Counted from the first letter of the stretch, positions 1 to 36,583 are shown. The stretch is DNA of 38,000 nt from Macrostomum lignano (GCA_002269645.1 NIVC01003428.1:1-38000), one strand, 5' to 3'. Translations and numbers: made by a program. The notes: generated by a model from the letters alone, not told the origin.

Positions 1-61
1 TAGTTACTTAGCAGTTTGATTTCGTTATACGACTACCTTCTAGCCACTTTCTCTCGCGCAG

Positions 62-3000
62 ATCTCCCACCTGACGGGCAAATCGGCTGTACTCGCCTTC
101 CTGCCTGCCGCCTCGGCGCTGCCGCACTCTGTGCTGCTCAATGGCGCTGAGACGCACCGCTGCGAAGCCGGCGGTCGCTGCCGGATCCGATTCGACGGCC
201 TGAAGCCGGACAATCTCTACCGAGCCGAGGTGCGCGCGCTGCCGTCGTCTGGGCGCGATTTGGCGGGACTGTCGGCCGGCGGCGCGGAGCGACGCCGCCG
301 ATTCTGACGCGGCTGTCGAGTTTCGAACCGGGCTGGGGCTCGGCCGGCCGGAGCCTCCAGCTAATGTGCAGGTAAGTGAGAGATCAGATGAGGTGTGACT
401 TGGGGCACCCTCTGGTCAACACCAAAGCGCATTGCCTGACGAGAAGAAATAAAATTGTGCGCGAGATTCATGTGCGGGTGATTTATAATTGGTCACATTA
501 ATTGCGTATTATTCCTAATGAACTACATTCATTTGGGCTTCTCCTGCGATTCAAATACACGAGGGTCAACCCTTTAGGCACAAGGAGTGTACATGTGAGG
601 CATTGTGTGTATGAGTGCCTGCCTGAGTACAGTATTGGTCACGCGCTTTTATGTGCTCAGGAGTCAGCGGAATGGGCAGAATTGCTGTCAGCGCTGGTTG
701 TGGGCCTTTTTTACGTTAAGGTGCGACCCTTCTGCAATTATTACGATTGTTAAGATATTATCATTATCAGAAACCAGAGCAACTTTATCAGAAACTTTAA
801 CATCTTCGAAAACCAGTGGAACATTCTCATAGGGAACTTTCTACCATCCATTCGACCATAGAAGACTCATAGGGGAATTACAAAGATGTCAAGGCTCCTG
901 GGGAATTGTTGAAATGCTGTCTCCCAATGCTTATAGACAATTGCTGAGACGTTAACGCTTACAGTAGAATTTCTGTAATGTTGTGTGAGGCTCTTAGGAA
1001 CAATCGATAAAATGTCAAGGTTCAAATGGCAAATTGCTGAGTTGTCAAGGTTCAGGGGGATTGCAAAAAAATTTATGGCTCATGGGGTTACCTCAGATGC
1101 TTTGAGTGTTAACAATACTGACTATACCAGCCACATCCTCTTTGTTGCCTCCCGACGGAGGGTGTGACGCAGATTGCTAGTACATCTATCTAAACCTTTC
1201 GCAACTAATTCACCCAGGTGGAATCGGACCTCGAAATGAGACCTTACTGGTGACCTGGACACCTCTAGCCGGTGCCGAGTCGAAGGGCACCCGGTTGGGT
1301 GGCTACGCGATCTACGCGGACGCCTCCCAGCTGGTGGCCACCTGCATGCAGGTCGACGCCGACCATTGCGTTGTTGCCATGGCAACGCTACCTACGAATG
1401 CCCGAGTAGTCACCTGCCGAACTGTAGCTACGATCAGGATGGACGAGTAGTTGAAAGCGAAGATTCGAGTCCCGCTTGCGAGCTCGACGACGTGATTCTA
1501 GCTGCAAGTTCAAGCTTGAGCCAGCAGGAACAGGTGCCTCTACCTCACGACGTGAGTTCGCGTTCTTTAAAAATAAAATTCTGAAAAATTTACACCCACT
1601 CGTATGTTTTCTGTTATGTTGTAAGATGCTTGTGCAACGTTTGTGTACTTTAAAGAATACGTACTTTTAAGGAGAATTTACAGCTTGTTAATGTAGACAA
1701 AGTCTGCAGATTAACAAAGCGCTTGGATTCCTGATGCAGTTCTATCTTTTAATTATTTCCTTAGCAAATTCTTACGTACAGAAAGGCTGCACTATTAAAA
1801 ACTCAAAATAACACGTGCTTCGTCAAAAAGTATTTTAACTGAATTTTTCTAGCGATTTATTAAAGTACTTCTAGGCGAAAAAAAGAACATTGTTCGAGAC
1901 AACGGTTTTCAGCAATATTTTTTGTTTAAAAAAGCGAAGGCAACAGCTCTGGGTGATAGAACTGGGTCTTTAAATTTTAAAAATTTTGTGGCTTTGTACG
2001 TAGACTTAAACATGTGCATCTATAAGCGTAATTCAGTTTGCGTAATCTCAAATACTGTGTAACATCGTATATAACGTTTAAACTCTACATTTTAATATCT
2101 CATCTCGCTGTAAATTAGACCACTGAAACACCAAAGGGTATGAGGACACACCGTCGAAACACCGAAGGGAATGAGGACACACCGTCGAAACACAGAAGGG
2201 AATGAGGACACACCGTCGAAACACAGAAGGGAATGAGGACACACCGTCGAAACACCGAAGGGAATGAGGACACACCGTCGAAATACAGAAGGGAATGAGG
2301 ACACACCGTCGAAACACAGAAGGGAATGAGGACACACCGTCGAAACACAGAAGGGAATGAGGACACACCGTCGAAACACAGAAGGGAATGAGGACACACC
2401 GTCGAAACACCGAAGGGAATGAGGACACACCACTGAAATGGCAATACTACATTAGCCCGCAGGAAATTAGCCCGCGGGAAGTTTGCCAGCAGACGTTTCC
2501 CGCAGACGTTTGCCCGCGGGCAAGCTTCCCGCGGGCTAATTTCCTGCAGGCTAATGTCGTACTGCCGTTTCGGGTCTATGACATTAGCCATCGAAACACT
2601 GAAGGGTACAAGCGTATGAGGACACACCATAATCGGGTTGAGATTATGACACCATTGAATTCAGGTAACATTTAAACAATTGTTACTAACACCAACTCCG
2701 TGACTCGCAATCCCAGGCAACCACAAACGAGTTTGGCATCTTCGTTAATTCAGCTGGTGTTCCAATTTTGTCGTCGCCAAATAGTGACGGAAAATTATTA
2801 GACGCCAACGGCAAAGCTTTGGCTTGTCGACGAGCGGTGGCATCGGTTGACCCGGAACTGGCGAGCAGCGCCTTATTGACAAACTAGACGGCTTGCCCAT
2901 TCGCGGTCTTCGACTTGGACCAAACGGAGTCCTACTAGACGAGTCCGGTTTGCCAGTTCGCGGTGAGAACGGCGAATTCTTCGGCGCTAATCATCGGCCG

Positions 3001-4527
3001 GTCTACGGTCGTCGAGGCGCCGAAGGTGAACTGTTGGACGAAGAGGGACAGGCTCTGCAGCAGCTGGGCTTGAACAGCTTTGGCGTGTTGGCCGATTCGA
3101 CCACCGGACTGCCGATTACCCGCCAGTCGGATGGTGCTCTACTCGACGCTAACGGCCAGCCAATCGATTGTCGACGTTGCGAGCTCAGCGCCAACGATTT
3201 GCTAGTCGATCCAGTCGACGGCTCGCCAATCGGCGTCACCAGTGTCAACGTTTTCGGCGTGCTGGTAGACTCGCAGGGCCGTCCGTTGCGCGGACCTCAG
3301 GGCGAGTTCTACGGAGCGAATCGGGCGCCGGTGTACGGCGGACTGCGCGGCCCTGACGGTCAGCTGATCGACCCGGCGAACGGCGGTCAGAGACGGACTC
3401 GAGTTAACGAGTTCGGTGCACTAGTGGACGCATCCACTGGCGAGTTGCTACTGGGTCCAGACGATCAGCTGTTAAATTCTCGGGCACAGCCAATGTCAAG
3501 CCGGCGGGTTCGGCTGGTTGAAGCGACGGAAGAGGGCGGCCAACAGCAGCTGGTGGACGCAGAAACTGGGGAGCCGCTGAGTCCGGAAACGGGCTGGCGT
3601 GTCAACGAGCACGGTGTCCTTGTGGACGCAGAGTCTGGCTTGGCTCTGCGTGGTCCTTCAGGCGAGTTTTTCGGTCCACCGGACGGTCTACCACTGGCCG
3701 GAGGTCCCACACGAGACGCCGAGGGTCGTCTGGTACGCGACGGCGTAGAAGATGGATCAGACTTAAGTGGTAAGCCGTTAAAAACGAAAGTCAACGACTG
3801 GGGCGTTCTAGTAGAGGTTGTCAGCGAAGGTGAAAACGCTGAGGAGCGACCAATTTTGTCGTCGGATGGTAAGCTTTTGGACGCGTCCGGCCGGGTCATC
3901 GACTGCCGAATCGTGCCAACAACAGCCGCAGCTCGGTCTCGTTTCGTCGACGACGTCGCTAAGAACAATGGACTGGAGCTGAGTGAGCACGGAGTGGTCA
4001 TCGACACGGCCAGTGGTCTACCGGTTCGAAGCCAGGCCGCTGGCGAGTTTCTCGGCACCGATGGTCGACCCGTCTACGGACCAAGAGACGCCGATGGCAA
4101 GCTTAAGATTGAAACGAAGCTGAATGATTACGGAGTTTTGGTCGACGCGACAACCGGGGAAGCAATCCGAGGACCGCGAGGACAGCTGTTAGACGCAAAC
4201 GGCCAGGCGATAACATGCGAGGTCGTTGAGCCCGGCTCGGACGGAGCCCTGCCGGCGCCGCCGACGGGTCAAGAGTATCGACTCAACGCGCACGGCGTAC
4301 TCATTAACTCCGCTTCCGGCCTGCCGGTGCGCGATTCCAACGGTCGATTCTACGGACTGAACCGGCGGCCAGTGTACGGGGAGAGACTGGCAAGCGGCAA
4401 GCTGGCTGGTGCGGTGCAGGTTGGTCCAGACGGCCATCTGGTGGACGCTGAGGGTAACCCGGTTAAAGGACCCGATGGAGAGCTGCTCGACGCCAATGGA
4501 CAGCCGATTGATGAGGCAGCTGTTGCA

Positions 4528-4559
<32 letters not shown>

Positions 4560-7121
4560 GGCTGATGCTGCTGCCACTACCGATACCGAAGCTGGAACGG
4601 GAGCCGAGACTGACGCTGCAGCCGCTGCTGGTGGGGCAACGGCTACAGCTGAAACGGTAACAGATGCCGTTGAGTCGGTGGAAGCCGCGGCAGAGACCGG
4701 AGACGGTGTCGCCAGTGGCGAGGAACTGGAAGCGGCGACTATTGCCACGGAGACGACGGAGACCGGGGCGCAGGCAGACTTCGAGGACGAGCCGCAGCCG
4801 GGCGATCCAGGCTTCTTTGGCCGCATCAAGAAAGGCTTCCAAGAGTTCCAAGAGAAGGTCGAAGAGTTCGCCGAAGAGACCAATGAGAAGATGAAGGAGT
4901 TCAACGAAGATACAAAGCGCAAGATGGAGGCGTTCAACGATGACACGCGCAAGAAGTTTGAAGAATTCGGCGAAGGCACAAAGAAGACGTTCGGAAATTT
5001 TGGCGAAAGCACGGCAGCGGCCTTCAAGAAGCTGGATCCGACGAGTTTAGGTGATGATGCGGCCGCGGCTCCGAAGGAGGAGACGGCTGAAGCGTCAACA
5101 TGATCATGATTTTCCTGGCGATGGGAGCTCGCGCCTTACCTGCACAGACAAGTCAATTATCACATGTTATTTCGGCAATTTCAATGCGTTTATTACAAAG
5201 AATCTAGCACAGTTATCACCACTGCACCGGCACCAAACAAATGGGTTCTAAAACTGCATACTGTGAAAGGTATCTATGCTAGAGATATGGCTACTGGTTA
5301 CTATGGTGATGGCGCTAAAACATGCTTGATAAAATATCATATTATTGCCATCAATTCAGTTTTAATACGGGTATAGATATTGCCTATAATTTTCCTATGC
5401 TCATATGCTATTTTTTGTTGTCGCGTTTTTCTGCCTACCGGTATGCGGTGCGACGTTTTTTAATTTCGAAAATAATGCAACTTACCGCTGTTAAAATAAC
5501 TTTCACCAAATCTTCTAAATTTTACATTTCTAGTCGGATTCCGATCAACAAAGTGAAGACAGAAGTGAGACCAGGACGCCGCGATCTCGTCCAAAGCCGA
5601 CTCGAATCTCCAACACGAATCTCAACCAGCATAGCAACCAATCTAGCAGACACGCTAGCGCTTCACCATCGCGTCGATATCAGACCTCGCCTTCGATTCG
5701 TGAGTGCTGGACTGAGAGTGCACTTATGTATGCAACTAAGATAGAGAGGCTTAACCATAGTACACCAACGAACCATAGTATCATAGTAAAATCATAAAAT
5801 GCGTCAAATTGAACCCACACTGATGAATAAAGTCTGTGAAAAACTTTATGCTTACCAATTTCAGTTGGGACATCAACTCCGAGACGCAGTCAGCAGGTGC
5901 AGCAGCAACAGCAACAGGTACTACAACAGCGGCAGAAGCAGATTCCGACGCAGCAACCAACAGCTGGGCGAGCACCTCATCGGGTGCATCGATATCGAGC
6001 GCATCATCGTCGACAGCAAGCTGACGATGCTTCTACTGACGAAGACGGCGCCTACGGCCAATCGGACGCGTTTCTGGTTGATTCATCAGCCAACGACAAG
6101 GATAACAACCAAAGCGACCAGGACATCGATCAAGGCAAAGAAGAGAGCTTTAAAGGGGACATTGTTGAAGAGGCTTCAACGCCGAGCAGCTGGCACCGAC
6201 GTCACCGACGTCACCGGCATCGGCACAGGACATCCAGACAGCAGCCCAATCGAATCTTTGTCGCCCTCTACGACTACGATCCGGCCTCAATGAGTCCGAA
6301 TCCCGACGGGGTGCAGCGAGAGTTGGCCTTTCTTGAGGGCCAGCTCTTGACTGTCTTCGGCAGCAGGGACGCCGACGGTTTTTATAACGGCGAGTGCGCA
6401 GGAAAGCTCGGACTGATTCCTGGAAACATGGTGGCCGAGGTGTCCGAGTACGAGTTGACTCAGAGCAAAATGAAACAATCCAGTGCCGGGTGAGGGATTT
6501 CTACTTCATATTTTACACTTTAACGACAGTTTGAGTTTAGACTAGATGTCGAAAACTGTAGCCAATTCAAACTACATTTATTTAAAAATCCAGCTTGAAA
6601 GAGAAATATTTTAAAGTACATTCGTGCATGCGTATTTTTGAATAAAAATTGGTAGCTCGTAGCTTGACTAGTTTCTCCACTGCATGTATGACTTCCCTAA
6701 ACATCCAGTTGGTTCAGAAGCTGACAAAACCAGCAAATCCACTTAACCCAGGCATGATGCAGGCTCAGATCTGCCGGGCAATGAGCAGTTATCAAAGCAT
6801 CACGATAGCAGAAAGAAGCAACAAAAGTGGAAATCTGCAACAACATCGCCGCTGCCACAGCAGATCGGTCGCAGTAGTCGTCAACGACAACGTTCAAGCT
6901 CGCGTCACCGCCTCATGGTTGCCCTGCACGACTTTGAGCCGGATCAAGCGCTGAATTGCGGATTCGGCCTCACCGCGGCGGTCGCCTTTCGCTCCGGCGA
7001 TTTGATCACGCCGTTGGGCCAGGCGGGCGAGGACGGCTTCCTACTGGCCAGGGTGGAACGGTCTCAGCTGGAGGGCTTCGTGCCGAGAGAACTTCTCAGA
7101 GTCTTATCGCCGGATGAATAA
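62..7121 (+). CDS. RIMBP2: RIM-binding protein (RIMBP2-like), 3' part, canonical SH3-containing isoform; 5' end lies outside the window
   Basis: Exons 62-371, 1218-1551, 5534-5699, 5865-6489 and 6752-7121, all with GT/AG ends and matching phases (0, 0, 1, 2). FN3 sequences ISHLTGKSAVLAFLP...FDGLKPDNLYRAEVRALP...AAVEFRT...PEPPANVQ|VES(G)PRNETLLVTWTP...GGYAIYAD...DHCVV...VTCRT match the 2nd and 3rd FN3 domains of RIMBP. SH3 IFVALYDYDPASMSPNPDGVQRELAFLEGQLLTVFGSRDADGFYNGECAGKLGLIPGNMV has the RIMBP-typical MSPNPD insert. A second SH3 (MVALHDFEP...GFVPRELL) ends at TAA 7119-7121. Three 1-bp frameshifts must be assumed (~285-300, ~1227, ~1431). Confidence 0.85.
2119..2434. repeat. Intronic minisatellite, 31-bp unit, ~10 copies
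   Basis: Unit GAAGGGAATGAGGACACACCGTCGAAACAC(A/C), seen at 2164, 2195 and onward. A degenerate copy resumes at ~2590-2630. Confidence 0.95.
2435..2571. mobile_element. Foldback/MITE-like hairpin element, 137 bp
   Basis: GAAATGGCAATACTACATTAGCCCGCAGGAAATTAGCCCGCGGGAAGTTTGCC (from 2435) is the near-perfect reverse complement of GGCAAGCTTCCCGCGGGCTAATTTCCTGCAGGCTAATGTCGTACTGCCGTTTC (to 2571). No clear TSD. Confidence 0.6.
2717..5103 (+). CDS. Large alternative (probably terminal) exon of the RIMBP-like gene: novel Gly-rich repeat domain, poly-Ala/acidic linker and 11-mer amphipathic helix
   Basis: Acceptor TCCCAG|GCA at 2716/2717 is phase 0, the same as donor GAC|GTGAGT at 1551/1552. The frame reads ATTNEFGIFVNSAGVPIL...LLDANG, needs one extra base at ~2870 (AGC G[G]C CTT = SGL), then continues as the 736-aa ORF 2893-5103 to TGA. 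Long, GC-rich, with a coherent internal repeat structure. Confidence 0.7.
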
Positions 7122-7414
7122 ATTGACAGTGGATACGGTCAATGAACGACTGAAGTAGAAAAATGACATTTAGAAGGAGCAATACGTAACATCTAGCGAC
7201 TTAGAACGACATGGGTAAGGAAGGAAACTTAGTTTCTGAGAAGATCGTTGAGGGCTCTCTTTTGCGCGAAAAAGTGGGATACTATATTGGAAGTACTATT
7301 AAATTTTGTAAAAACCTCCTTTAAATGAATTTCTGACTTAGAAAGGATCGACATAAAAGATGAAAATGCGTCACAAGTTTTGATAACGCATTTTTAAGAC
7401 TAATCTTTATAAAA

Positions 7415-9728: not shown

Positions 9729-10906
9729 TCAGACTAAAACCAGCTCGAATACTTCCATTCCCACGAAGCCTTGGCATCTGTTGCCGAATCCACCGTCCAC
9801 GCAGGGAAAGACGTTGCAGAGATCCGCAGACTGATAGGGCAGACCATAGACTATGCGATCGCCGCAGTAGCACCACCTGCGATCGGCGATGCCAAAGTAA
9901 TTGAACGGCTTGGGTTTCCTCGCCGTTAAGCATTCTGTCATGCAGGTTGTCTGGCTCATTTCATCCAGGGGTCCCGCCACCTCCAGTTCTAGTACGGGAG
10001 GCAATTCGTCCGACAACAAATAGCAGCCTTTTGGAACGGCTGGAGTGCAAAAAATGGTGAAAGGAATAAATTTAGAGCACCCAGACCTCCTAAGCTTGTC
10101 TGTATCTGTTGTTATAGCCAGTATAATAGCATGGGCGGGGGGAGCTTGCGGCACCGGGGACACGTGCCCCCCCCCCCAAAAAAAATGAGTCCACGCGGCA
10201 CAAATCTATTGTGCCCCCCTGAATTTTTGAAATTTTGATATTTTAGTGCATAGTATTACGGGATATTGGTAATTTTTAGTGCTTTTTCTGATTTTAGGCC
10301 CTAATCGAAGCTTATAGGGACACCCGTGCCCCCTTGCCCTGTGCCTGGTGCCCCCCCCCCACTAAAATATTAGGCTCCGCCGCCCCTGTATAGGCTGTTG
10401 ACTAGTGAATGAAGACGCTGTCGTCTTCAAAGGTGGGACGATGGTTATATTTGCTTATTATTCTTTTATGAGATATTAAGAATTAAGAGCTTAAAAGCCT
10501 ATAGCTAATGGCTATATTTATAATTTAATTTAGAATATTTTTAATAACTATAGCTACATAATTTAATTTAAACAAAGTCTATCATTTATATATAATTTAA
10601 TTTTTTAAAATTCTATTATCTATATATTATTTAATTTAAACAAAGTCTATTATATGTATTTGATTTAATTTAAACAGTCTTTTATCTATATATAATTTAA
10701 TTTAAATAAAGTCCAATAAAGACGCTTAAGACGAGAATAATAGGCAATTAATGCACTAATTCTGGCTTATTCCGCTCATTTAAGCAAGAGAATTCCGACG
10801 ATTAAAAAGCTCAGATGAGTCCAAGTGTCTCACCTTTGAAAATGGCTGCAAATACGCCCTGAACAGAAAGAAGAACAATCAGAGTCGTCAGAGCTGAGCA
10901 CAGCAT
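9729..10906 (-). CDS. Small secreted single-WSC-domain protein (~149 aa), 2 exons
   Basis: Exon 1 (10906-10834) encodes the signal peptide MLCSALTTLIVLLSVQGVFAAIFK and ends G|GTGAG (phase 1). Exon 2 (10105-9729) follows AACAG| and continues in frame: DTDKLRRSGC...GCY...MSQTTCMTEC...YFGIADRRWCYCGD...CNVFPC...CQG...VFE. This is the WSC cysteine pattern. Confidence 0.85.
10130..10388. mobile_element. MITE-like insertion (CAGGGGCGG-type termini, hAT-like) in the WSC gene intron
   Basis: Left end CATGGGCGGGGGGAGC versus the reverse complement of the right end, CAGGGGCGGCGGAGCC. Internal C-runs. Flanks AATAG and TATAG match at 4 of 5 positions. Confidence 0.5.
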
Positions 10907-12729: not shown

Positions 12730-13265
12730 CATAGAGTGTGGGGGTGAATCGTCAAGTTGTCAAGGCTCATAGAGTGTTGGGGTGAATCGTCAAGTTGTCA
12801 AGGCTCATAGAGTGTTGGGGTGAATCGTCAAGTTGTCAAGGCTCATAGAGTGTTGGGGTGAATCGTCAAGTTGTCAAGGCTCATAGAGTGTGGGGGGTGA
12901 ATCGTCAAGTTGTCAAGGCTCATAGAGTGTGGGGGGTGAATCGTCAAGTTGTCAAGGCTCATAGAGTGTGGGGGGTGAATCGTCAAGTTTTTAAGGCTCA
13001 TAGAGTGGGAGTGAATCGTCAAGTTGTCAAGGCTCATAGAGTGTGGGGGGTGAATCGTCAAGTTTTTAAGGCTCATAGAGTGGGAGTGAATCGTCAAGTT
13101 GTCAAGGCTCATAGAGTGTGGGGGGTGAATCGTCAAGTTTTTAAGGCTCATAGAGTGGGAGTGAATCGTCAAGTTGTCAAGGCTCATAAAGTGGGGGGGG
13201 GGGCTGAATCGTCAAGTTTTCAAGGCTCATGGAGTGGGGGTGAATCGTCAAGTTGTCAAGCTCAT
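12730..13265. repeat. Minisatellite, 39-42-bp unit, ~13 copies
   Basis: Unit GTGAATCGTCAAGTTGTCAAGGCTCATAGAGTG(T)GGGG with a variable G run. Decayed relatives with the GTCAAGG core occur at ~880-1100 and 13300-13480. Confidence 0.95.
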
Positions 13266-14267
13266 GGAATAACTGAATTGCTGTGGCTCATAATAGACAG
13301 ATCATTTCTGACAGGTCAAGGATTACCGGGGAAAATTGCTAGTGATTTAAGGCTATGAGGGAGTCGTTTAATAGCTGAAGCTCAAGGGCAATGAGGGAAC
13401 TGCTAAGATGTCATTTCTCATGGGGGCCGGATTTCTGAGATGTCAAGGCTTCAAAGAAGAACTGCTGAGGTGACAAAAGATTTGCTCAGATGTTGACTGG
13501 AATAGATTTTGGCTAATAGGAATTCGTGCTGGACTGTTTGGGCGAGGATTAGGCTAAATGATACTGATATCTGCTAAATGGAAAATATTGATTAGACAGA
13601 ATTGATTCCTTGACTTGAGCGAATAAAAATGGGCATATAGCAATTTAGCAATAGCAATGTCATCAAGTGTTGAGTACTCTAGTGAGCTCAGTTGCGAACC
13701 CAGTCCATTGATGCCAAATTCTGATAAAGCTATTTTTATTTTCATTTTTAACACGAGTAAATTTCTGTCTCTTGTTGCAGAGCACCCGAAATGTAAGTTC
13801 ATCATTGATGCACCCTTATTGAACTTTTATTTTCTTCCTATGTGTTTAAATTGCGACACTTACATAAACCTTTGCACTGACTGGTGTGGGACAATGGCAG
13901 AAACGGATCTCGCTCTCACTCATAAATTTACCCAATTAGCGTCTGAGCACGAGCTCAAGGTGCCTTCGGTCCTCTGGCCGGACCCACTTCGAACTCTGAG
14001 CTGAAGATCGCGTCTTCGTTGGGATCGACCCATCCCCAGGCACACACAATACAGTACGAATCTCCAGCCCTCTAAGAAATAACGCAGCTCACTCAAAATG
14101 CTCTTGGATTCAACGAGTCCGACAGGCAAGTGACAGGGCTTGGTTGCACGGAGCGCTGAGTAGTATCGTAGTTGACTGACTCAGCTGAGTGAGCTCTCGA
14201 TCGTCTGAGTTTATCTGAGTATCTGAGTCTGAGTAGACTCTGCGCACCACCCATGCTGTCAACCTCA

Positions 14268-18854: not shown

Positions 18855-19915
18855 TTACACTGGTGTTGGGACAATGGCAGAAACAGATCTCGCTCTCAGA
18901 TTGATCCAATGAGCCTCAGAGCACGAGCTCAAGGTACCTTCGATCCTCTGGCCGGACCCGCTTCGAGCTCTGAGCGGAAGATCGCGTCTTCGTTGTGATC
19001 GACCCGTCCCCAGGCAGACACAATACAGTACGAATCTCCAGCCCTCTAAGAAATAACGCAGCTCACTCAACATGCTCTTGGATTCCACGAGTCCGACAGG
19101 CAAGCGAGCGACAGGGCTTGGTTGCACGGAGCGCTGAGTATTATCGTAGTTGACTGACTCAGCTGAGTGAGCTCTCGATCGTCTGAGTTTATCTGAGTAT
19201 CTGAGTCTGAGTAGACTCTGCGCACCACCCATGCCATCAACCTCAACACAAATGATATAAATATTGTGCACTGTTTCATCATTGGGTGCACCGACCCCGA
19301 CTACAACTGACAATGCAACTAGTGACTGTAGCGCCCTTCACTTTGCTTGTCCTTTACTTTGCATTAAAATTTCAGTTAAATTTAAAGAGGCTGCTACGAT
19401 TATATTTGGGGTCCATCACTCCATCTCTAATCGGCTACGGATCATCCAGCGAGTCCATGAAAATCGAGAGATGTCAAAAGGACTGCAGTGTCACTACAGC
19501 TCGCTACTATGGAGTAATACGTGGAAAAATTTGCTACTGCGGTGATGAAATAAGGGGTACACGATTGTCTTTAAGAAAATGTGATTACAGGTGTCCGGGA
19601 AATCGAAAGCAGATCTGCGGTGGTGAATGCATAATGGTTGTGTATGAGTAGCCCTTCCTAATTGAGGCCTGATTAACTCATTAGACTAACTTTTCAAAAA
19701 AACGTCATTTAAAAATCATGTTGGACTCTGATTATTACGAGTAAATAAACACAATCTTTAAACAGTGTCCGTAGTGTCCGTGTTTTCTGAAACAATATTT
19801 CTCAAAAAAGTTTTGCTCATAAAAGTGCTGGAGCAGAGCTGCACAATGAAAAAGATGGCCACAGCCGCATGTTTTTGTGCAGCGCACAGGCTGCTGCAGC
19901 TGTAGAGAGAAAAGT
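18855..19915 (+). repeat. Tandem segmental duplication, copy 2
   Basis: Paralog of 13870-15340, lacking the 14491-14789 insertion. Confidence 0.9.
19313..19651 (+). CDS. WSC-domain protein copy 2 (5' structure uncertain)
   Basis: Open frame MQLVTVAPFTLLVLYFAL (hydrophobic, signal-like) ... SSESMKIERCQKDC...YYGVIRGKICYCGD...CDYRCPGNRKQICGG...VVYE*. The expected GCYD motif (GGCTGCTACGAT, ~19389) is in another frame. Confidence 0.65.
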   Translation: MQLVTVAPFTLLVLYFALKFQLNLKRLLRLYLGSITPSLIGYGSSSESMKIERCQKDCSVTTARYYGVIRGKICYCGDEIRGTRLSLRKCDYRCPGNRKQICGGECIMVVYE

Positions 19916-23311: not shown

Positions 23312-26300
23312 TCAAGGCGTAAGCCGCTTCGGGTCGCGTGGAAACAAGGAAGTCTTGCGGATGTTGTCCAACCCGAGAAACAACATGGTGACCCGCTCCA
23401 GACCTGCGGCAATTCGTGAGGGGTACAAGTACACGCACTAGTCATGTTGAGTAATAATTAGTCAGCTCAATGACCCCCTCAATAATTACAGGAGATGGCA
23501 ATGACCCCCACCCCCATAATTACAGTGGAGGGCAATGACCCTACCCTCTCGAATTATAACGGAAAGCTTTGACCACCGCCACCCATCCACCCTCATAAAT
23601 ATCCGCCCCTTCGGCATCCACCCTCATAAATATCCGCACCTTCGGCATCGGCCCTCATAAATATCCGCCCCTTCGGCATCCGCCTTCATAAATATCCGCC
23701 CCCATCGGCACCCGCCCTCATAAATATCCGCCCCATTGGAATCCGCCCTCATAAATATCCGCCCCCATAAGTATCCGCTCTCATAAATATCCGCCCCCAA
23801 TGGAATCCGCCTTCATAAATATCCGCCACATCGGCATTCGCCCTCATAAATATCCGCCCCATCGATCCTCCCCTTAGTCTCCGCCCCCAAGCAGCCCCCC
23901 TAAAACACACGGAGCCCTCACCAATGCCTCCGCCAGCATGGGGCGGGCAGCCGTACTTGAAGCAATCAACATAGGACTGCATCTTAGCCGTATCGATGCC
24001 AAAACCCTGGGCCCGTTCAACCAACAAGGCCGGGTCGTGAATGCGCTGGGCGCCGCTCAAGATCTCTTCGCCTCGCATAAAAAAATCGTAGCTATTCGAA
24101 TAGCCGGGCCTGGCCGGGTCGGGCATCGTGTAGAACGGCCGAGCAGCCAACGGGAACTTATCGAGTATATAAAAGTCCGTCTTGTACTTTGCTTTAACCA
24201 GACGGCCAAGCAGTTTCTCGTTAGGCGTTGACAGATCGTCAAAGTCGCCCTGTTCGGCTCCGGCCTCTCTTAGCATCCTGACGGCTTCGGGAAACTCTAG
24301 ACGAAGAGTTGGTTCGAGAAACTCGAACGGCTCAGCCGGGTACTGCTTGCACACGGTGGAGATTAGATCGGCGCAGCTCGCCTGCAGGCCTTTGAATATG
24401 GCCACAAATAGTCGGCTGAGAGTGTCCAGCACCTCGTGGTAATGACTAAGGAACGCCATCTCCAAGTCTAGGCCAATAAATTCGGTCAAGTGCCGATGCG
24501 TGTTCGAGTCCTCCGCCCGGAATACGCTGCCGATGGTGAACACTCGATCGAAATCCCCCGCTATGGCCATCTGCTTGTAGAGCTGGGGAGACTGGGCCAA
24601 GTAGGCCTTGGACTTGAAGTACGTCACCTCGAATACGTTGGCGCCGCCCTCTGATGCAGCGCTGATGATCTTCGGCGTGTGGATCTCCACGAAGCTTTCA
24701 GCTGCGGGGATTGCAGATTTGATGAGGGACTCTGATTGGGGATTCTGATTGGGGATTCTGATTGGGGATTCTTATTGGGGATTCTGATTGGGGATTCTGA
24801 TTGGGGATTCTTGTTGGGGATTCTGATTGGGGATTCTGATTGGGGATTTCTAATTGGGGATTTCTAGTTGGGGATTCTGATTGGGGATTTCTAATTGGGG
24901 ATTTCTAATTGGGGATTTCTAGTTGGGGATTCTGATTGGGGATTCTGATTTAGGATTCTAATTCGGGATTCTGATTTGGGATTTCTAGTTGGAGTTTCTG
25001 ATTGGGGATTTTGGTTGGTGATTCTGGTTGGGGATTCTGATAGGGGAATTCCGGTTGGGGATTCTGATCGGGGATTCTGGTTGGGGATTCTGATTGGGGA
25101 TTCTGATAGGGGAATTCCGGTTGGGGATTCTGATCGGGGATTCTGGTTGGGGATTCTGATCGGGGATTCTGGTTGGGGATTCTGATAGGGGATTCTGGTT
25201 GGGGATTCTGATTGGGGATTCTGATAGGGGATTCTGATAGGGAAATTCCGGTTGGGGATTCTGATCGGGGATTCTGATTTAGGATTCAAATTCGGGATTC
25301 TGATTTGGGATTTCTAGTTGGAGATTCTGATTGGGGATTTTGGTTGGTGATTCTGGTTGGGGATTCTGGTTGGGGATTCTGATTGGGGAATTCCGGTTGG
25401 GGATTCTGATCGGGGATTCTGGTTGGGGATTCTGATTGGGGATCCTGGTTAGGGATTCTGATCGGGGATTCTGGTTGGGGATTCTGATTGGGGGTTCTGG
25501 TTGGGGATTCTGATTGGGGGTTCTGGTTGGGGATTCTGATTGGGGGTTCTGGTTGGGGATTCTGATTGGGGATTCTAATTGGAGATTGGATGAATTCAGG
25601 TTATGGATACTACGAGCTACTTTATTACATGCACCTATTATACTACTGCTAGCTAAGGGTAGTTAATCAGTAGGCCAGCAAGAACTCACCAGCCAGAGTG
25701 TCTCTGAAGAGTCGGCAAACTTCAGCCTCTAATCGGAATACGGCTTGGTTGGTTGGAGTACGCAGATCGATGACCCGATTATCGAGTTTAATCTCCTGAC
25801 CGGCTGTGGCTAGAGAGGCTTGCTGTTGATCTGGGCGCATGGCGTCTTCAACTTGCAGTGGCAGGCGGGGCTCCGCAGCCGACACGCACCAGATCTCAGT
25901 GGTATGCAGCTCCACCTGATTTCGATTCGGAGATTTACTGTCATGTATATCTAATCTGCCTAGTCTATCTGACCCCCTAGTCTATTCGACGGATCTAAAT
26001 CTAAGTCTATCTACCAGATTTTAAATCTAAGTCTATCTGCCAGATTCTAAATTTAAGTCTATCTGCCAGATCTAAATCTACTCAGATCTACTCTATCTGC
26101 CAGATCTACATCTACCCAGATCTACTCTATCTGCCAGATTTAAATCTACCCAGATCCAGTCTATCTGTCAGATATAAATCTATTAATCGCTAATCTGCAA
26201 CAGAGCGAGCTGATGCCAATAATTTCTCACCTCCTGCTGCGAGCACGCGGCCACAGGTGAATCCACTTTACGCAGCACGCCAGCCACATCAACAATGGAC

Positions 26301-27916
26301 TCTTTACTAACTGACGCGGCAAACTTCATCATCTGACGGGACACAGCCGAGCCAACAGACAGCACACACTGCACAGAGTAGTGCTGATGCCGAATAACAA
26401 AGAAACCAGTTTTGCCTTTGAACCGAGACGTGTGCAGGCGGCCTCGAATCCACACGGATTTCCCATCCAAGCTGGACTCCAACAGTTTGATAGGCGAGTA
26501 GGATTTGCTCAGAAAGTTCTCCGATCGGTTTAACGGCATATTGCCGTACAAACCCTGCGACACGTCGGCCTCGGACGATTCCGACGCGTCGGCAGCGGCA
26601 TCGCCAGCGGAATTCTCCGTGGATGGGGCGCCTGCGGCTGCTTTATGGGCGGCTTTTTTCTCCTTTTTGGCCGCCTTTTTAGCCGCTTTCTCTGCCGCTT
26701 TCTTGGCGGCCTTGTCGCTTTTATTCAATTGAAAGGTGGGGGGGGGGTTTCCTGTAGGAAGCCAGCCAAGTCGGCAAACGGGAGCTGCTGGGATGCTGAG
26801 ACTCAATGGGGAGTTGCTGAGATGCATACTCATATCTTGACACACCTATCAACATCTCTAATCTACCCATATCTAGCCTATCAATATCTCTAATCTACCC
26901 ATATCTAGTCTCCCCATCGATATCTATAATCTACTCATATCTTGACTCACCTATCAACATCTCTAATCTACCCATATCTAGCCTATCAATATCTCTAATC
27001 TACCCATATCTAGCCTATCAATATCTCTAATCTACCCATATCTAGTCTACCCATCGATATCTCTAATCTACTCATATCTAGTCTCTCCTATCAATATCTC
27101 TAATCTACCCATTTCTAGTCTCTCCTATCGATATCTCTAATCTGTCTATATCTAGTCTCTCCTATCAATATCTCTAATCTACCTATTTCTAGTCTCTCCT
27201 ATCGATATCTCTAATCTGTCTATATCTAGTCTCTCCTATCAAAATCTCTCATCTACCCATATCTAGTCTCCCCATCGATATCTATAATCTACTCATATCT
27301 AGTCTCTCCATCAATATCTCTAATCTACCCATATCTAGTCTCTCCTATCAATATCTCTAATCTACCCATATATAGTCTATCACATCGATATCTCTAATCT
27401 ACCCATATCTAGTCTCTCCTATCAATATCTCTAATCTACCCATATCTAGTCTATCACATCGATACCTCTAATCTACCCATATTTAGTCTCCCCATCGATA
27501 TCTATAATCTACTCATATCTAGTCTCTCCTATCGATATCTCTAATCTGTCTATATCTAGTCTCTCCTATCAATATCTCTAATCTACCCATATCTAGTATC
27601 TCCTATCAATATCTCTAATCTCTCTAATCTAGTCTATCACATCGATATCTCTAATCTACCCATATTTTGTCTCCCCATCGATATCTCTAATCTACCCATA
27701 TCTAGTCTCCCCATCGATACCTATAATCTGGACGAGGATGTGAACCCAGCAGAGCAGCTGATCAAAATGCGACTCATATCTAGTCTCTCCTATCGATATC
27801 TCTAATCTACTCATATTTAGTCTCCCCATCGTATAATCTACCCATATCTAGTCTCACCAACTAACTGCTTACCTATTGTCAGCGGCAGGTACTTCCACAG
27901 CTACGGGTTCCGACAT
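23312..27916 (-). CDS. DARS1: Cytoplasmic aspartyl-tRNA synthetase, complete, 5 exons, 542 aa
   Basis: Exons 27916-27873, 26717-26231, 25915-25690, 24701-23922 and 23403-23312 total 1629 nt with consistent phases (2, 0, 1, 1). Motifs: [96 protein letters not shown]. Confidence 0.97.
23590..23860. repeat. Minisatellite in DARS1 intron 4, ~31-bp unit
   Basis: Unit CTCATAAATATCCGCCCC...GG(C/A)ATCCGCC. Confidence 0.9.
24730..25585. repeat. Minisatellite in DARS1 intron 3, 13-bp unit
   Basis: Unit G(A/G)TTGGGGATTCT, with block duplications (24940-25030 resembles 25270-25360). Confidence 0.95.
25950..26180. repeat. Degenerate repeat in DARS1 intron 2
   Basis: Recurrent TCTATCT(G/A)CCAGA...TAAATCTA. 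Confidence 0.8.
26835..27855. repeat. Minisatellite in DARS1 intron 1, 32-37-bp unit
   Basis: Unit TCTAATCTACCCATATCTAGTCTCTCCTATCAATATC and variants. Confidence 0.95.
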
Positions 27917-29237: not shown

Positions 29238-31293
29238 TTAACAGTCACCAGAAGACTGAGACGAAGTCTGCAACATTGCTTTCAACTTGGCATTCTCAAT
29301 TTCAAGCAGTTCCACTTGCCGCTGCATATCTTGCACTTTAGTTAACAGCTGACTTGATTCTTCAGCTAAATGTACGTTTTGTATCTGCAATTTGCCGAAA
29401 TAATCCACCGCCTTGTTTAATACGGCACTTTTTGGCAGGCAGAGCCAAGGCGCTTGCTGCTGATCAAGCTGTTGTTGCTGATGCTGCTGCTGTAACTGAA
29501 GCTCCTGGTCTTGCTCTGAGTCCATTGTTAGAGCCTGCTGGCTGTCCGGAGAAGCCGAGGTTGCAGCGGCGGCTGCTGCTGCGTGGCCGCTCCATTCCTG
29601 AGCTGGCATCATCTCGGCCAGCTGGTTGATCAGCGTGTTGATCTTGTCACGGCGCCGCCGCTCCACCTGTGACACAGCGGCGATTTTAAGGCCATTCTTA
29701 GAAAGGCGAATCCTATAGGGATGATTCTTAGAAAGGCGAATCCCACAGGGATGATTCTTAGAAAGGCGAATCCTACAGGGATGGTTCTTAGAAAGGCGAA
29801 TCCTACAGAGATGGTTCTGAGAAAGGCGAATCCTACGGGGGAATTTCTGAGAAAGGCGATTCCTACGGGGAATTTCTGAGAAAGGCGAATCCTACGGGGG
29901 AATTTCTGAAGAGGCGAATGCTACAGGGATAATTCTTAGAAAGGCGAGTCCTACAGGTGCGATTCTTAGAAAAGTAAACCCTACAGGTGCGATTCTTTGA
30001 AAAGCGAATCCTACAGAGACGATTCTTAGAAAGGCGAATCCTATAGGGATGATTCTTAGAAAGGCGAATCCTACAGGGATGGTTCTTAGAAAGGCGAATC
30101 CTACAGAGATGGTTCTGAGAAAGGCGAATCCTACGGGGGAATTTCTGAGAAAGGCGAATCCTACGGGGGAATTTCTGAGATAGGCGAATCCTACGGGGGA
30201 ATTTCTGAGAAAGGCGAATCCTACCGCGGAATTTCTGAGAAAGGCGAATCCTACGGGGGAATTTCTGAGAAAGGCGAATCCTACGGGGGAATTTCTGAAG
30301 AGGCGAATGCTACAGGGATAATTCTTAGAAAGGCGAGTCCTACAGGTGCGATTCTTAGAAAGGTAAACCCTACAGGTGCGATTCTTTGAAAAGCGAATCC
30401 TACAGAGACGATTCTTAGAAAAGCGAATCCTGCAGAGACGATTCTTAGAAAGGCGAATCCTACACAGCTGATTCTTAGAAAGACGAGTCCTACAGAGGGG
30501 ATTTTCAGAAAAGCGAATCCTACAGGGGTGATTCTTAGAAAAGGCTAATCTTACACTGGGCGACCCTTAGAAAGGCGAATCCTACAGGGTGATCATTTTA
30601 ATGCGAGATTAGAAGACAAATATTACAGGACAATAAAAAATGCAATTCTCGCGAGAATTGACCTTCAGGCTACATCAGTTACAGGGATTAAAGGGCCAAA
30701 TGTTGATCAAAAAGGTTGCATTTAATTTTTACCTCATTATGACTTGATTTTCTACGCTTCTCCCGATCGCAGCAAGCCGACAGCTGTCCATTAGCTGCAC
30801 TGCCGTTGACATTTCCAACAACAGAAGCAATGACTGGTCCGCCGCCGCCACCGCTGCTGCTGCTATTGCTATTGCTGTTGCTGCCAACAAGTCGATCTGA
30901 ATCCAACAGAAAGTTCTGCTGCTGTTGAGAGTGAGACGGTCTGCCACTGCCGCCACTATAAGGTCGAGGTCGTTTAACAGCATGCTGTTGATGATGATTG
31001 GCATCTATGGAATTCAGAGCGGCATTAGATTGCAATTGATAAGCGGCAATGTGTGAAGTAGTGGCTACAGAGGCAGTGGCAGCGGCAGAGCCAGCAGTAG
31101 TAGTAACGGAGCTGCTGGGCGTCACCATTATATAGATGTCACCGTTTGTGCCTTGCACCAACTGGCCAGTTGTTATGCTGGCAAGACTGCCTGCTGGGCC
31201 AATAGGCTGCGGCTGCTGCTGTTGCTGACCAGCTGATGATGAAGCTTCCAATGCGGCTCTCCAGCTTCCATTGGTGCCAATTCCGGGCCGCAT
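29238..31293 (-). CDS. USF: USF-like bHLH-leucine zipper transcription factor (start codon uncertain)
   Basis: Exons 31293-30733 and 29666-29238 join in phase 0 to give EKRRKSSHNE|VERRRRDKINTLINQLAEMMP...KSAVLNKAVDY...LEIENAKLKAML. This matches the USF signature HNEVERRRRDKIN plus a zipper. A strong acceptor lies at 31392 and a 31-nt upstream exon at 32841-32811. Confidence 0.85.
29693..30590. repeat. Minisatellite in the USF intron, 30-bp unit, ~30 copies
   Basis: Unit TTCT(T/G)AGAAAGGCGAATCCTACAGGG(A/G)(T/A)(G/A)A. Confidence 0.95.
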
Positions 31294-31439: not shown

Positions 31440-31985
31440 GGAAAGTGAGATAAGAGCTTATAGAATATGGGAAGGTGAGATTGGAGCTTACAGATTATGG
31501 GAAGGTGAGATTGGAGCTTACAGATTATGGGAAGGTGAGATTGGAGCTTACAGATTATGGGAAGGTGAGATTGGAGCTTACAGAATATGGGAAAGTGAGA
31601 TGGGAGCTTACAGATTATGGGAACGTGAGATGGGAGCTTACAGAATATGGGAAAGTGAGATTGGAGCTTACAGAATATGGGAAGGTGAGATTGGAGCTTA
31701 CAGAATATGGCAAAGTGAGATTGGAGCTTACAGAATATGGCAAAGTGAGATTGGAGCTTACAGAATATGGGAAACTGAGATGGGAGCTTACAGAATATGG
31801 GAAAGTGAGATTGGAGCTTACAGGATTTGGGAAAGTGAGATTGGAGCTTACAGGATATGGGAAAGTGAGATTGGAGCTTACAGGATATGGCAAACTGAGA
31901 TTGGAGCTTACAGAATATGGGAAACTGAGATTGGAGCTTACAGGATATGGGAAAGTGAGATCGGAGCTTACAGAATATGGGAGTC
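31440..31985. repeat. Minisatellite, 30-bp unit, ~18 copies
   Basis: Unit GGGAA(A/G)GTGAGATTGGAGCTTACAGAATAT. Confidence 0.95.
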
Positions 31986-31999
31986 TGAAAAAGTGATTG

Positions 32000-32490
32000 G
32001 GGTGTGATAAAGGAGAGTGGGAAAGTGATTATGGGCGTGGTAAAGGAGAGTGGGAAAGTGATTATGGGTGTGGTAGACTGTGGGAAAGTGATTATGGGTG
32101 TGGTAGACTGTGGGAAAGTGATTATGGGTGTGGTAGACTGTGGGAAAGTGATTATGGGTGTGGTAAAGGAGTGTGGGAAAGTGATTATGGGTGTGGAAAG
32201 AGAGTGTGGGAAAGTGATTATGGGTGTGGTAAAGGAGTGTGGGAAAGTGATTATGGGTGTGGTAAAGGAGTGTGGGAAAGTGATTATGGGTGTGGAAAGA
32301 GAGTGTGGGAAAGTGATTATGGGTGTGGTAAAGGAGTGTGGGAAAGTGATTATGGGTGTGGTAAAGGAGCGTGGGAAAGTGATTATGGGTGTAGTAAAGG
32401 AGTGTGGGAAAGTGATTATGGGTGTGGTAAAGAAGTGTGGGAAAGTGATTAGGGGTGTGGTAAAGGAGTGTGGGAAATTTATTATAGGTG
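32000..32490. repeat. Minisatellite, 30/33-bp unit, ~15 copies
   Basis: Unit GGGAAAGTGATTATGGGTGTGGTAAAGGAGTGT. Confidence 0.95.
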
Positions 32491-32810
32491 TGGTAAAGCG
32501 ATTAGACTGCTATTTAAAAATGCTTAGTGCTGTTACAACCAGCAAGGAAGAAAAGATGAGTCATACTTTTTTATTAATATAGACGCATATCATGTTCTTA
32601 ATTATGCGAAACGCCCAAATTATTTTATTTAGATTAAGTTGTTTTTGTTTATTTGTTTTGTTTATTCTGAATAAAATTGTACTACAGGCAGACAGACAGC
32701 AAACTTTCGAGCAGAAAGAGCTATTGTTATTTTTTTCAAAGGCGCTATGATCATAGCGGATTAAATAATGTTATTTAGTTGCTATGTTGCTATGCAGGTA
32801 GTGTCCTTAC

Positions 32811-36100: not shown

Positions 36101-36583
36101 GGGGAATGGGATAAATGATGACGGGGAGAGGGGAATGGGATCAGTGATGATGGGTAGAGCTGGGAATGGGATGATGATGGGAGAGGGGAATGGGATAAAT
36201 GATGATGGGAGGGGAATGGGATCAATGATGAAGGGAGAGGGGAATGGGATAAATGATGATGGGAGGGGAATGGGATAAATGATGATAATGGGATGGGGCA
36301 AAAGGGGAAAGGGAAAAAACGGGAAGTGGAACATAAAAAAGCAGAAGCTAATAGCAGAAAGCAAAGTCTCACCTGCTCGCCACCCTCATCATAGATCTTC
36401 CTCTTCTTAGGATCGGATAGCACTTCAAACGCCATGGCAATCTCCTTGAACTTGTCGCCAGCCTCCGGATTCTTGTCCGGATGATATTTCAATGCCAATT
36501 TTCTGTAAGCCTTCTTGAGCTCCTGCTCAGAAGCGTTCGGGGGTCACGCCTAGCAAATCGTAGAACTTTGTTTCCTTAACCAT
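33154..36583 (-). CDS. DNAJA1: DnaJ/Hsp40 subfamily A co-chaperone (DNAJA1/2/4-like), 4 exons, ~412 aa; one apparent +1 frameshift in exon 1
   Basis: Exons 36583-36373, 35670-35275, 35184-34653 and 33254-33154 have matching phases (0, 0, 1). J domain [13 protein letters not shown]...[10 protein letters not shown] region, four CxxCxGx(G/K) zinc motifs, [11 protein letters not shown], and a C-terminal CaaX-like VQCASS*. A G5 run at 36539-36543 has one base too many (expected [16 protein letters not shown]). Confidence 0.95.
33440..33935. repeat. Minisatellite in DNAJA intron 3, 42-bp unit, ~12 copies
   Basis: Unit GTGTACATTGAGGGACCGGGTTTTGGGGGTGAAGGCGGTCGA. Confidence 0.95.
35820..36295. repeat. 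Minisatellite in DNAJA intron 1, 29-bp purine-rich unit
   Basis: Unit GGGAATGGGATAAATGATGACGGGGAGAG. Confidence 0.95.

Follow-up and report, generated by a model that had tools for sequence, protein, structure and literature searches.

The stretch NIVC01003428.1:1-38000 of the Macrostomum lignano assembly GCA_002269645.1 (38,000 nucleotides, hereafter the window, with positions counted from its first letter) raises the question of what is encoded by an array of Gly-rich modules at 2717-4512 on the plus strand, and to which gene, if any, the array belongs. The reading favoured here, to which a probability of roughly 0.6 is assigned, is that the array is part of a genuine coding exon of a gene for RIM-BP, a core organiser of presynaptic release sites, that this is most likely an alternative 3′ exon, and that the domain it encodes is a hairpin repeat without an earlier name. 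The RIM-BP exon, a module plan shared by both module types, a frameshift in the first module, a tail of 11-residue repeats and a motif relation to bacterial TrbI/VirB10 proteins were absent from an initial annotation of the locus, which had described alternating Gly-rich modules of two types, A and B, about eleven in number, at 2717-4510.

Translation of 2717-2884 in one frame and of 2869-5103 in the next gave eleven modules in strict alternation (B0, A1, B1 ... A5, B5), with the borders placed at the (V/L)N-x-(aromatic)-G-V-L-V-D starts, and all the peptides quoted in the initial annotation were recovered. Mean identity is 44% between modules of the same type and 29% across types, and of the 462 possible ways to label five modules out of eleven as A, strict alternation has the highest contrast and is the unique best. 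The strict pattern phi-phi-[DNG]-x(2,4)-G-x-[PA]-phi (phi, a hydrophobic residue) occurs 18 times in 593 residues, against a mean of 0.15 and a maximum of 2 in 2000 shuffles. The distinction of two module types thus stands as a labelling, but the types are not unrelated. Profile-profile alignment of the five A with the six B modules (hhalign) gave a probability of 97.6% (E 2.8e-12, 49/53 columns), so A and B are not independent inventions, and judged by their sequences they are two homologous forms of a single module, about 55 amino acids long.

Modules of both types are built on one plan of three hairpin motifs, phi-phi-D-x-x-G-x-P-phi, and the whole array holds about 32 such short motifs with the consensus G-x-phi-phi-D-x-x-G-x-P-phi-x-G. 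Hairpin 1 has the consensus (V/L)N-x-x-G-V-L-V-D-x-x-x-G-x-P-phi-R-G and hairpin 3 the consensus D-G-x-L-phi-D-x-x-x-G-x-P. It is hairpin 2 that is diagnostic of type, reading G-E-F-(F/Y)-G-x-N-x-R-P-V-Y-G in A and G-x-L-L-D-A-N-G-Q-P-I-(D/T)-C in B. The smallest repeating element is one motif (about 15-19 residues); three motifs form a module, and what was duplicated is a pair of modules, AB, spanning about 110 residues.

The codon-position, dN/dS, codon-diversity and open-frame results together argue for an old duplication under protein-level selection, at least until recently. Mismatches between same-type modules fall on codon positions 1, 2 and 3 in 0.47, 0.35 and 0.69 of the aligned codons, and GC content by codon position is 0.72, 0.49 and 0.60. 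Between paralogous modules dN is about 0.5, with dS above 1 or not computable through saturation, and where Gly, Val, Leu or Pro is invariant in the alignment, 3-5 different synonymous codons are used. The two hydrophobic residues before D and the one after P are conserved as strongly as the Gly residues. Identity between modules at the DNA level is only 40-59%, and no DNA-level array was detected inside 2717-4510 by Tandem Repeats Finder, even at score 30. The earlier claims that the DNA copies are diverged while the residues are conserved, and that selection acts on the protein, are both borne out by these figures. The open frame of 744 codons (2869-5103, ending in TGA at 5101-5103) lies in DNA of 60% GC, and chance is excluded as its cause. 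The AB pair was duplicated five times, long enough ago for synonymous sites to become saturated. Origin from a transposable element and an antisense gene were both rejected, as there were no such Pfam matches and the codon-position signature fits the plus-strand frame.

The eleven modules do not all share one reading frame, as a one-base frameshift between 2850 and 2868 puts the start of B0 in a different frame. The segment 2717-2884 translates as ATTNEFGIFVNSAGVPILSSPNSDGKLLDANGKALACRR..., and hairpins 1 and 2 of B0 (TNEFGIFVNSAGVPI... and GKLLDANGKALAC) share this one frame, while hairpin 3 (LIDKLDGLPIRG, LIDKLDGLPI) is in the frame of A1-B5. A very short intron behind the change of frame between B0 and A1 was excluded, since no more than about 35 nt are shared by the two open frames. 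Use of 2868|2869 as the acceptor was likewise rejected: this site has no pyrimidine tract, and the exon would start in the middle of B0, whose hairpin 3 uses the A1 frame.

The structure of A1B1 was predicted with AlphaFold2, using the other four AB pairs as the alignment (five sequences in all). The model has a mean predicted local distance difference test score (pLDDT) of 83.3 and a predicted template modelling score (pTM) of 0.62, with no residue below 50, and secondary structure assignment by DSSP found only beta bridges of 1-3 residues, positioned at phi-phi-D and P-phi of all six motifs. The AB unit is predicted from this model to consist of six two-stranded mini-hairpins located at the phi-phi-D-x-x-G-x-P-phi motifs. 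A two-unit model, A1B1A2B2, showed the same hairpin pattern at a pLDDT of 67.6 and a pTM of 0.55, with inter-module segments below 50. No significant neighbour was found for either model by Foldseek against the PDB (best E 0.07 and 0.015, probability ≤0.12, TM-scores 0.12-0.18). Stacked beta-hairpins with D-x-x-G turns had been proposed in the initial annotation; the hairpins are supported by the model, whereas their stacking is not supported by the two-unit prediction or the TM-scores.

The top non-significant Foldseek entries are hairpin solenoids, namely the LytA choline-binding domain, glucansucrase repeats and the repeat domains of large clostridial toxins. The LytA domain, the glucan-binding repeats of glucansucrases and the clostridial toxin CROP resemble the array in being tandem arrays of hairpins of about 20 residues, but they have no sequence similarity to the modules, the modules lack an aromatic-rich motif and no superimposable fold was found. 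The likeness would be one of building principle only.

A different view of the same modules is that they form a flexible, disordered Gly-rich linker, whose conserved motifs would serve as short linear sites for binding or form turns only transiently. The composition (14.5% Gly, 7% Pro), the absence of long strands, the loss of confidence in the two-unit model and between its modules, and the lack of a structural neighbour would all fit such a linker, and a folded domain between FN3 and SH3-II has not been reported in canonical RIM-BPs (PMC7565545). Against it, a pLDDT of 83 was reached for the single AB unit with only five aligned sequences, and the conservation of hydrophobic positions at the level of Gly suggests packing rather than disorder. 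A disordered linker is therefore regarded as unlikely, though it deserves to be kept in mind.

The gene surrounding the repeat is, by sequence comparison, RIM-BP. The joined translation of 44-371 and 1217-1551, made with three one-base corrections, aligned in one unbroken stretch with FN3-II/III of Drosophila RBP (6q9m residues 111-289, E 3.1e-21) and also matched the FN3 of RIMBP2 (2csp, 5e-7). SH3-II matched RIMBP2 (2csq, 1.7e-25), Drosophila RBP (4z88, 6.8e-22) and Pfam SH3_2 (37.9 bits, cut-off 21.8), and SH3-III is divergent, with 16.8 bits for SH3_9, below the cut-off of 30. SH3-I and FN3-I would lie 5′ of the window start. The repeat exon, of about 2.39 kb (2717-5103), has the FN3-III exon on its 5′ side and those of SH3-II and SH3-III on its 3′ side, all on the same strand. 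Its acceptor (2716|2717) and the FN3-III donor (1551|1552) are both phase 0 and hence compatible, and since the Ser/Arg-rich linker exon also starts in phase 0, the FN3-III donor can be joined either to the repeat exon or, skipping the repeat, to the linker exon. No strong in-phase donor, such as a cassette exon would need, was found in the repeat exon before its stop codon, the only candidates being weak ones at 3733, 4327 and 4420, and an alternative terminal exon is for this reason the simplest model of the splicing. The features of the locus are listed in Table 1. In the divergent SH3-III (6915-7122), ALHDFEP..., GFLLARV and GFVPREL stand in place of ALYDYDP, GFYxGE and GLVPSNF.

The likeness to the RIM-BPs (Drosophila Rbp and vertebrate RIMBP1-3) thus lies in the flanking FN3-II/III and SH3-II exons, in the compatible phases and in a motif of the tail. 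The difference lies in the A/B repeat domain, which the exon of this gene encodes and the RIM-BPs as described do not have: these hold three SH3 and two or three FN3 domains, with no repeat domain between FN3-III and SH3-II (PMC7565545).

Table 1. Modules, exons and signals of the repeat-containing RIM-BP locus in the window
Feature	Position	Strand	Remarks
RIM-BP FN3-II exon	44-371	+	donor cag|GTAAGT 371|372; needs one-base frame correction at about 255-300
RIM-BP FN3-III exon	1217-1551	+	donor gac|GTGAGT 1551|1552, phase 0; one-base shifts at about 1217-1230 and 1425-1440
Branch-point-like TACTAAC followed by acceptor tcccag|G	2682-2716	+	repeat exon starts at 2717, phase 0
Module B0 (type B)	2717-2913	+	split by one-base frameshift; layout parallels B1 (…CRRCELSANDLLVDPVDGSPIG)
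Module A1	2914-3069	+	
Module B1	3070-3243	+	
Module A2	3244-3402	+	
Module B2	3403-3600	+	most degenerate B; LLNSRAQPMSS, without Cys
Module A3	3601-3789	+	with insertions
Module B3	3790-3978	+	insertion in hairpin 1
Module A4	3979-4119	+	
Module B4	4120-4281	+	
Module A5	4282-4419	+	
Module B5	4420-4512	+	truncated, short; two hairpins
Ala/Thr/Glu-rich low-complexity linker	4513-4803	+	37 Ala in 97 residues; (GCT)n poly-Ala run 4519-4574
C-terminal tail	4804-5103	+	GFFGRIKKGF at start, AAFKKLDP then acidic end, TGA 5101-5103
RIM-BP Ser/Arg-rich linker exon	5534-5699	+	phase-0 start
RIM-BP SH3-II exon	5865-6489	+	SH3-II at about 6251-6442; within open reading frame 5897-6493
RIM-BP last exon, divergent SH3-III	6752-7122	+	acceptor 6751|6752, phase fits; stop 7120-7122 overlaps AATAAA

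Downstream of the modules the exon encodes seven amphipathic repeats of 11 residues at 4810-5040, GFFGRIKKGFQ and six more, in which Phe/Met and Lys/Glu recur in register. The period in the DNA is 33 bp and the 11-mer register is perfect. The hydrophobic moment peaks at 0.39 at 98.2 degrees and is 0.38 at 100 degrees, falling to 0.06-0.13 at 90, 110, 120, 160 and 180 degrees. This periodicity is the signature of a 3-11 amphipathic helix, as in apolipoproteins A/E, alpha-synuclein, perilipins and LEA proteins, which have the 11-residue amphipathic periodicity in common with the tail. With the Apolipoprotein family the resemblance is one of periodicity and the tail is not a member, scoring 18 bits against a Pfam cut-off of 90. 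In the RIM-BP of Lingula and in vertebrate RIMBP2 an Ala/acidic stretch is followed by the C-terminal sequence KKKGFFSKGK(S/Y)(I/L)(F/L)KKL (supplement of PMC7565545). The tail, GFFGRIKKGF...AAFKKLDP, recalls this end, with the seven 11-mers lying between the two half-motifs, and the SH3-III exon ends in ...LSPDE before its stop, without a tail like KKKGFFSKGK..KKL. This suggests, as a lead and not as proof, that the exon may carry the RIM-BP C-terminal motif expanded by 11-mers.

The position of the open reading frame (ORF) inside RIM-BP does not in itself make it part of a RIM-BP protein, and it could instead form an independent gene within one of the RIM-BP introns, or the terminal exon of a transcript unit located upstream. 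Such an arrangement would agree with the ORF having its own stop and no strong in-phase donor downstream, with the phase-0 route from FN3-III straight to the linker exon at 5534, and with the presence of frameshifts in the FN3 exons when the 744-codon ORF has none. However, no ATG is present close to the beginning of the ORF (in frame, Met first occurs in module B2), and no candidate first exon was found in 1552-2716. The exon start has a good acceptor whose phase matches the FN3-III donor, and the tail resembles the RIM-BP C-terminal motif. A gene of its own is accordingly improbable.

The frameshifts themselves bear on whether the locus is intact. In addition to that in B0, three further one-base shifts were placed in the FN3 exons by alignment to Drosophila RBP, at about 255-300, 1217-1230 (GAATCGG-ACCT) and 1425-1440, and all four fall together within the first 2.9 kb of the window. 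No frameshift was found in about 6 kb of other coding sequence, comprising the rest of the repeat ORF, the linker exon, SH3-II, SH3-III, four exons of the aspartyl-tRNA synthetase gene DARS and the DnaJA exons. This contrast, and an SH3-III scoring under the Pfam cut-off, would be expected if the RIM-BP locus were decaying and the repeat a recently inactivated relic, its ORF open only because little time has elapsed. At the density of shifts in the FN3 exons (3 in about 660 nt), however, about 11 would be predicted in the 2.39-kb repeat exon instead of the single one observed, which makes the repeat clearly better preserved than the FN3 exons, and the divergence among the modules records a long-term coding signature. 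The shifts also adjoin short homopolymers (GG, CCC), beside which assembly indels are often found. A relic is on balance judged distinctly improbable.

No named family fits the repeat, to the extent that sequence and model comparison can tell, and the initial annotation had likewise been unable to assign one. Hidden Markov model (HMM) searches with the AB unit, and AlphaFold and Foldseek checks as it had proposed, gave no confident match to a described repeat family. With the whole ORF nothing in Pfam exceeded its gathering threshold (best Dioxygenase_C, 21.3 bits against 27.3), single AB units gave nothing above 16 bits, and no PDB sequence matched the repeat. The repeat domain also found no counterpart among 5.8 billion proteins searched through a word index, which is poorly suited to the purpose, as the SH3-II query also gave no candidate. 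An exhaustive HMMER search of 1.84 billion representative proteins with the AB-unit profile gave 53 matches at E <= 1e-3, the best at 4e-16 and none at 1e-30. These matches score 10-19 bits per stretch and owe their significance to the sum over 5-20 stretches. The best one (P0001) is an Asn/Ile-rich protein of 4282 residues with long tandem repeats, matched only at profile positions 62-96.

Most of the top matches are long bacterial proteins of DotG/IcmE type (E to about 3e-15), with an N-terminal membrane anchor, a central DG-x-L-V-D-x-x-G-N-P-I-L hairpin array and a C-terminal TrbI/VirB10 domain, one cluster including WP_045861752.1 of Teredinibacter purpureus. Alignment of module B with a 77-residue unit of one of these proteins (hhalign) gave a probability of 95% (E 3e-8, 32/77 columns), corresponding to two hairpins, and what is shared is the two-hairpin motif V..dG.LlDa.GnPI.g.dG..L.danG..i. 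The bacterial repeats differ in having a period of about 77 residues and four hairpins, without A/B alternation and without the GEFYGxNRRPVYG hairpin, and the membrane proteins that contain them have TrbI at the C-terminus, a domain that the repeat-exon protein lacks. TrbI scored 13.4 bits against the repeat-exon ORF (cut-off 35, E 0.068), on a stretch of repeat and linker that is not a real domain. The link to the bacterial repeats appears to be at the level of the motif, which may reflect a distant common origin or convergence.

Eukaryotic matches are the uncharacterised Onthophagus taurus XP_022918532 (P0005) and Lingula anatina XP_013415029 (P0018) and the small metagenomic proteins P0034, P0042, P0050 and P0053. 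These animal and microbial-eukaryote proteins have the same short hairpin, GxLLDxxGxP(I/L), in long tandem arrays, and P0034 contains GPNGELLDANGFPILGPNGELLGADGKPILG, very close to the start of A1. They differ in having periods of 10-50 residues and flanks such as LIM and KY-like Ig domains (Lingula), a dual-specificity phosphatase or Cys-rich regions; the A/B pair occurs in none of them, and none is a RIM-BP. Some relatives reach Pfam families, namely DUF3659 (PF12396) by P0034 and P0008, RHS_repeat (PF05593) by the Lingula protein and FlgE/F/G D1 (PF22692) by P0005 and P0008. DUF3659, the RHS/YD repeat and FlgE/F/G D1 resemble the modules in their D-x-x-G hairpin turns, but none of them (cut-off for DUF3659 24.8 bits) matched the ORF or the modules even at E <= 10, and the RHS/YD signature YxYDxxGRL is not found in the modules, which have no Y-x-Y-D. 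As a separate observation, P0005 and P0018 are very large and contain hundreds of residues of related hairpins (GVQLDESGHPLLDAEGHMLT...; QLYDQNGQPI...LHFDEHGRLVDQSN), with no dedicated family model and with summed weak matches to the flagellar FlgE D1, RHS and 'beta-flower' profiles.

Horizontal transfer from a bacterium with a DotG/IcmE-like TrbI/VirB10 protein, or bacterial contamination, might be suspected from the bacterial best-scoring matches, the alignment of module B over 32 columns and the GC content of the repeat exon (60%), richer than that of its flanks, but is very unlikely, given RIM-BP exons of similar GC on both sides, spliceosomal signals, only 10-19 bits per repeat, the missing TrbI domain (13 against 35 bits) and comparable repeats in the animal proteins of Onthophagus and Lingula.

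Several observations weigh against the repeat being an expressed part of RIM-BP. No AATAAA or ATTAAA was found within 500 nt 3′ of the repeat-exon stop, and none of the strings GVLVD, LLDANG and RPVYG occurs in the RIM-BP sequences surveyed from sponges to mammals. No orthologue was found among the 1.84 billion representative proteins, A/B alternation being present in 0 of the 53 HMMER matches. The DARS protein of the window has at most 78% identity to anything in the protein collection, which thus has no close relative of the species, so the missing orthologue is not proof of absence. The frameshifts may be local assembly indels, or they may mark a truly disabled 5′ part of this RIM-BP copy. 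The likeness of the tail to the RIM-BP end covers about 10 residues, and the two-unit structural model has moderate confidence and no significant structural neighbour. With these points counted, an alternative 3′ coding exon of RIM-BP is still preferred.

The isoform that we infer from this splicing would keep the N-terminal SH3-FN3 part and have SH3-II and SH3-III replaced. In RIM-BP these two domains bind RIM and the calcium channel. The replacement would be an extended, probably semi-rigid and non-globular rod or multivalent surface of about 32 hairpins, ending in an amphipathic tail that presumably binds lipid or membrane. Its role would be that of a spacer or multivalent arm, not of a catalytic or globular domain. 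A further-reaching and tentative proposal, which we would not expect to hold in full, is that the two-hairpin motif G-x-L-L-D-x-x-G-x-P-(I/L) defines an undescribed, widely scattered class without a Pfam model, to which the modules would belong and which links the central regions of bacterial type IVB VirB10/DotG-like proteins with several animal and protist proteins, and that it was recruited in this animal lineage as an alternative C-terminal arm of the active-zone scaffold RIM-BP, SH3-II/III being swapped for a hairpin rod and an expanded GFFSKGK...KKL tail acting as an 11-mer membrane-binding helix.

RIM-BP as described has no domains other than SH3 and FN3, an architecture regarded as conserved between sponges and mammals. 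If real, an isoform with the SH3 pair swapped for a hairpin array and a lipid-binding tail would be a new wiring of this scaffold. The hairpin motif also recurs over hundreds of residues in bacterial secretion-system proteins and in uncharacterised eukaryotic proteins without a family model, and the module profile could be used to annotate this class. If the exon is unexpressed or decaying, it would be a lineage-specific repeat of little consequence. Tandem beta-hairpin repeats are already known and the core motif recurs elsewhere; it is the combination of the A/B pair, the location in RIM-BP and the 11-mer tail that has no described counterpart.

Among the remaining features of the window, a nearly perfect 31-bp minisatellite at 2125-2431 occupies part of the intron that immediately precedes the repeat exon (Tandem Repeats Finder score 565, 9.9 copies, 97% matches), followed on its 3′ side by short arrays of 13-15 bp at 2451-2555. 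Long minisatellite arrays at 12843-13358, 31475-32582 and 33319-33992 are open in many frames. The cytoplasmic DARS gene is intact at 23315-26845 on the minus strand with at least 4 exons, and its intron at about 24700-25660 is filled by a minisatellite giving the same peptide in several frames. A DnaJ subfamily A-type gene with a J domain, a Cys-rich zinc-finger region and C-terminal domains is located at 34603-36498 (minus), and a basic helix-loop-helix-leucine-zipper gene with poly-Gln tracts and a USF/MITF-like basic region, ERRRRDKIN, at 29238-31293 (minus). The Cys patterns of two ORFs at 9729-10163 (minus) and 19286-19651 (plus) are alike (…YYG…CYCGD…) and recall WSC-type carbohydrate-binding domains. 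Strand asymmetry is extreme at 15-18, 27-28 and 32-33 kb, with an AT skew of up to 0.59 at 16-18 kb and a GC skew of -0.56 at 27-28 kb and +0.62 at 32-33 kb.

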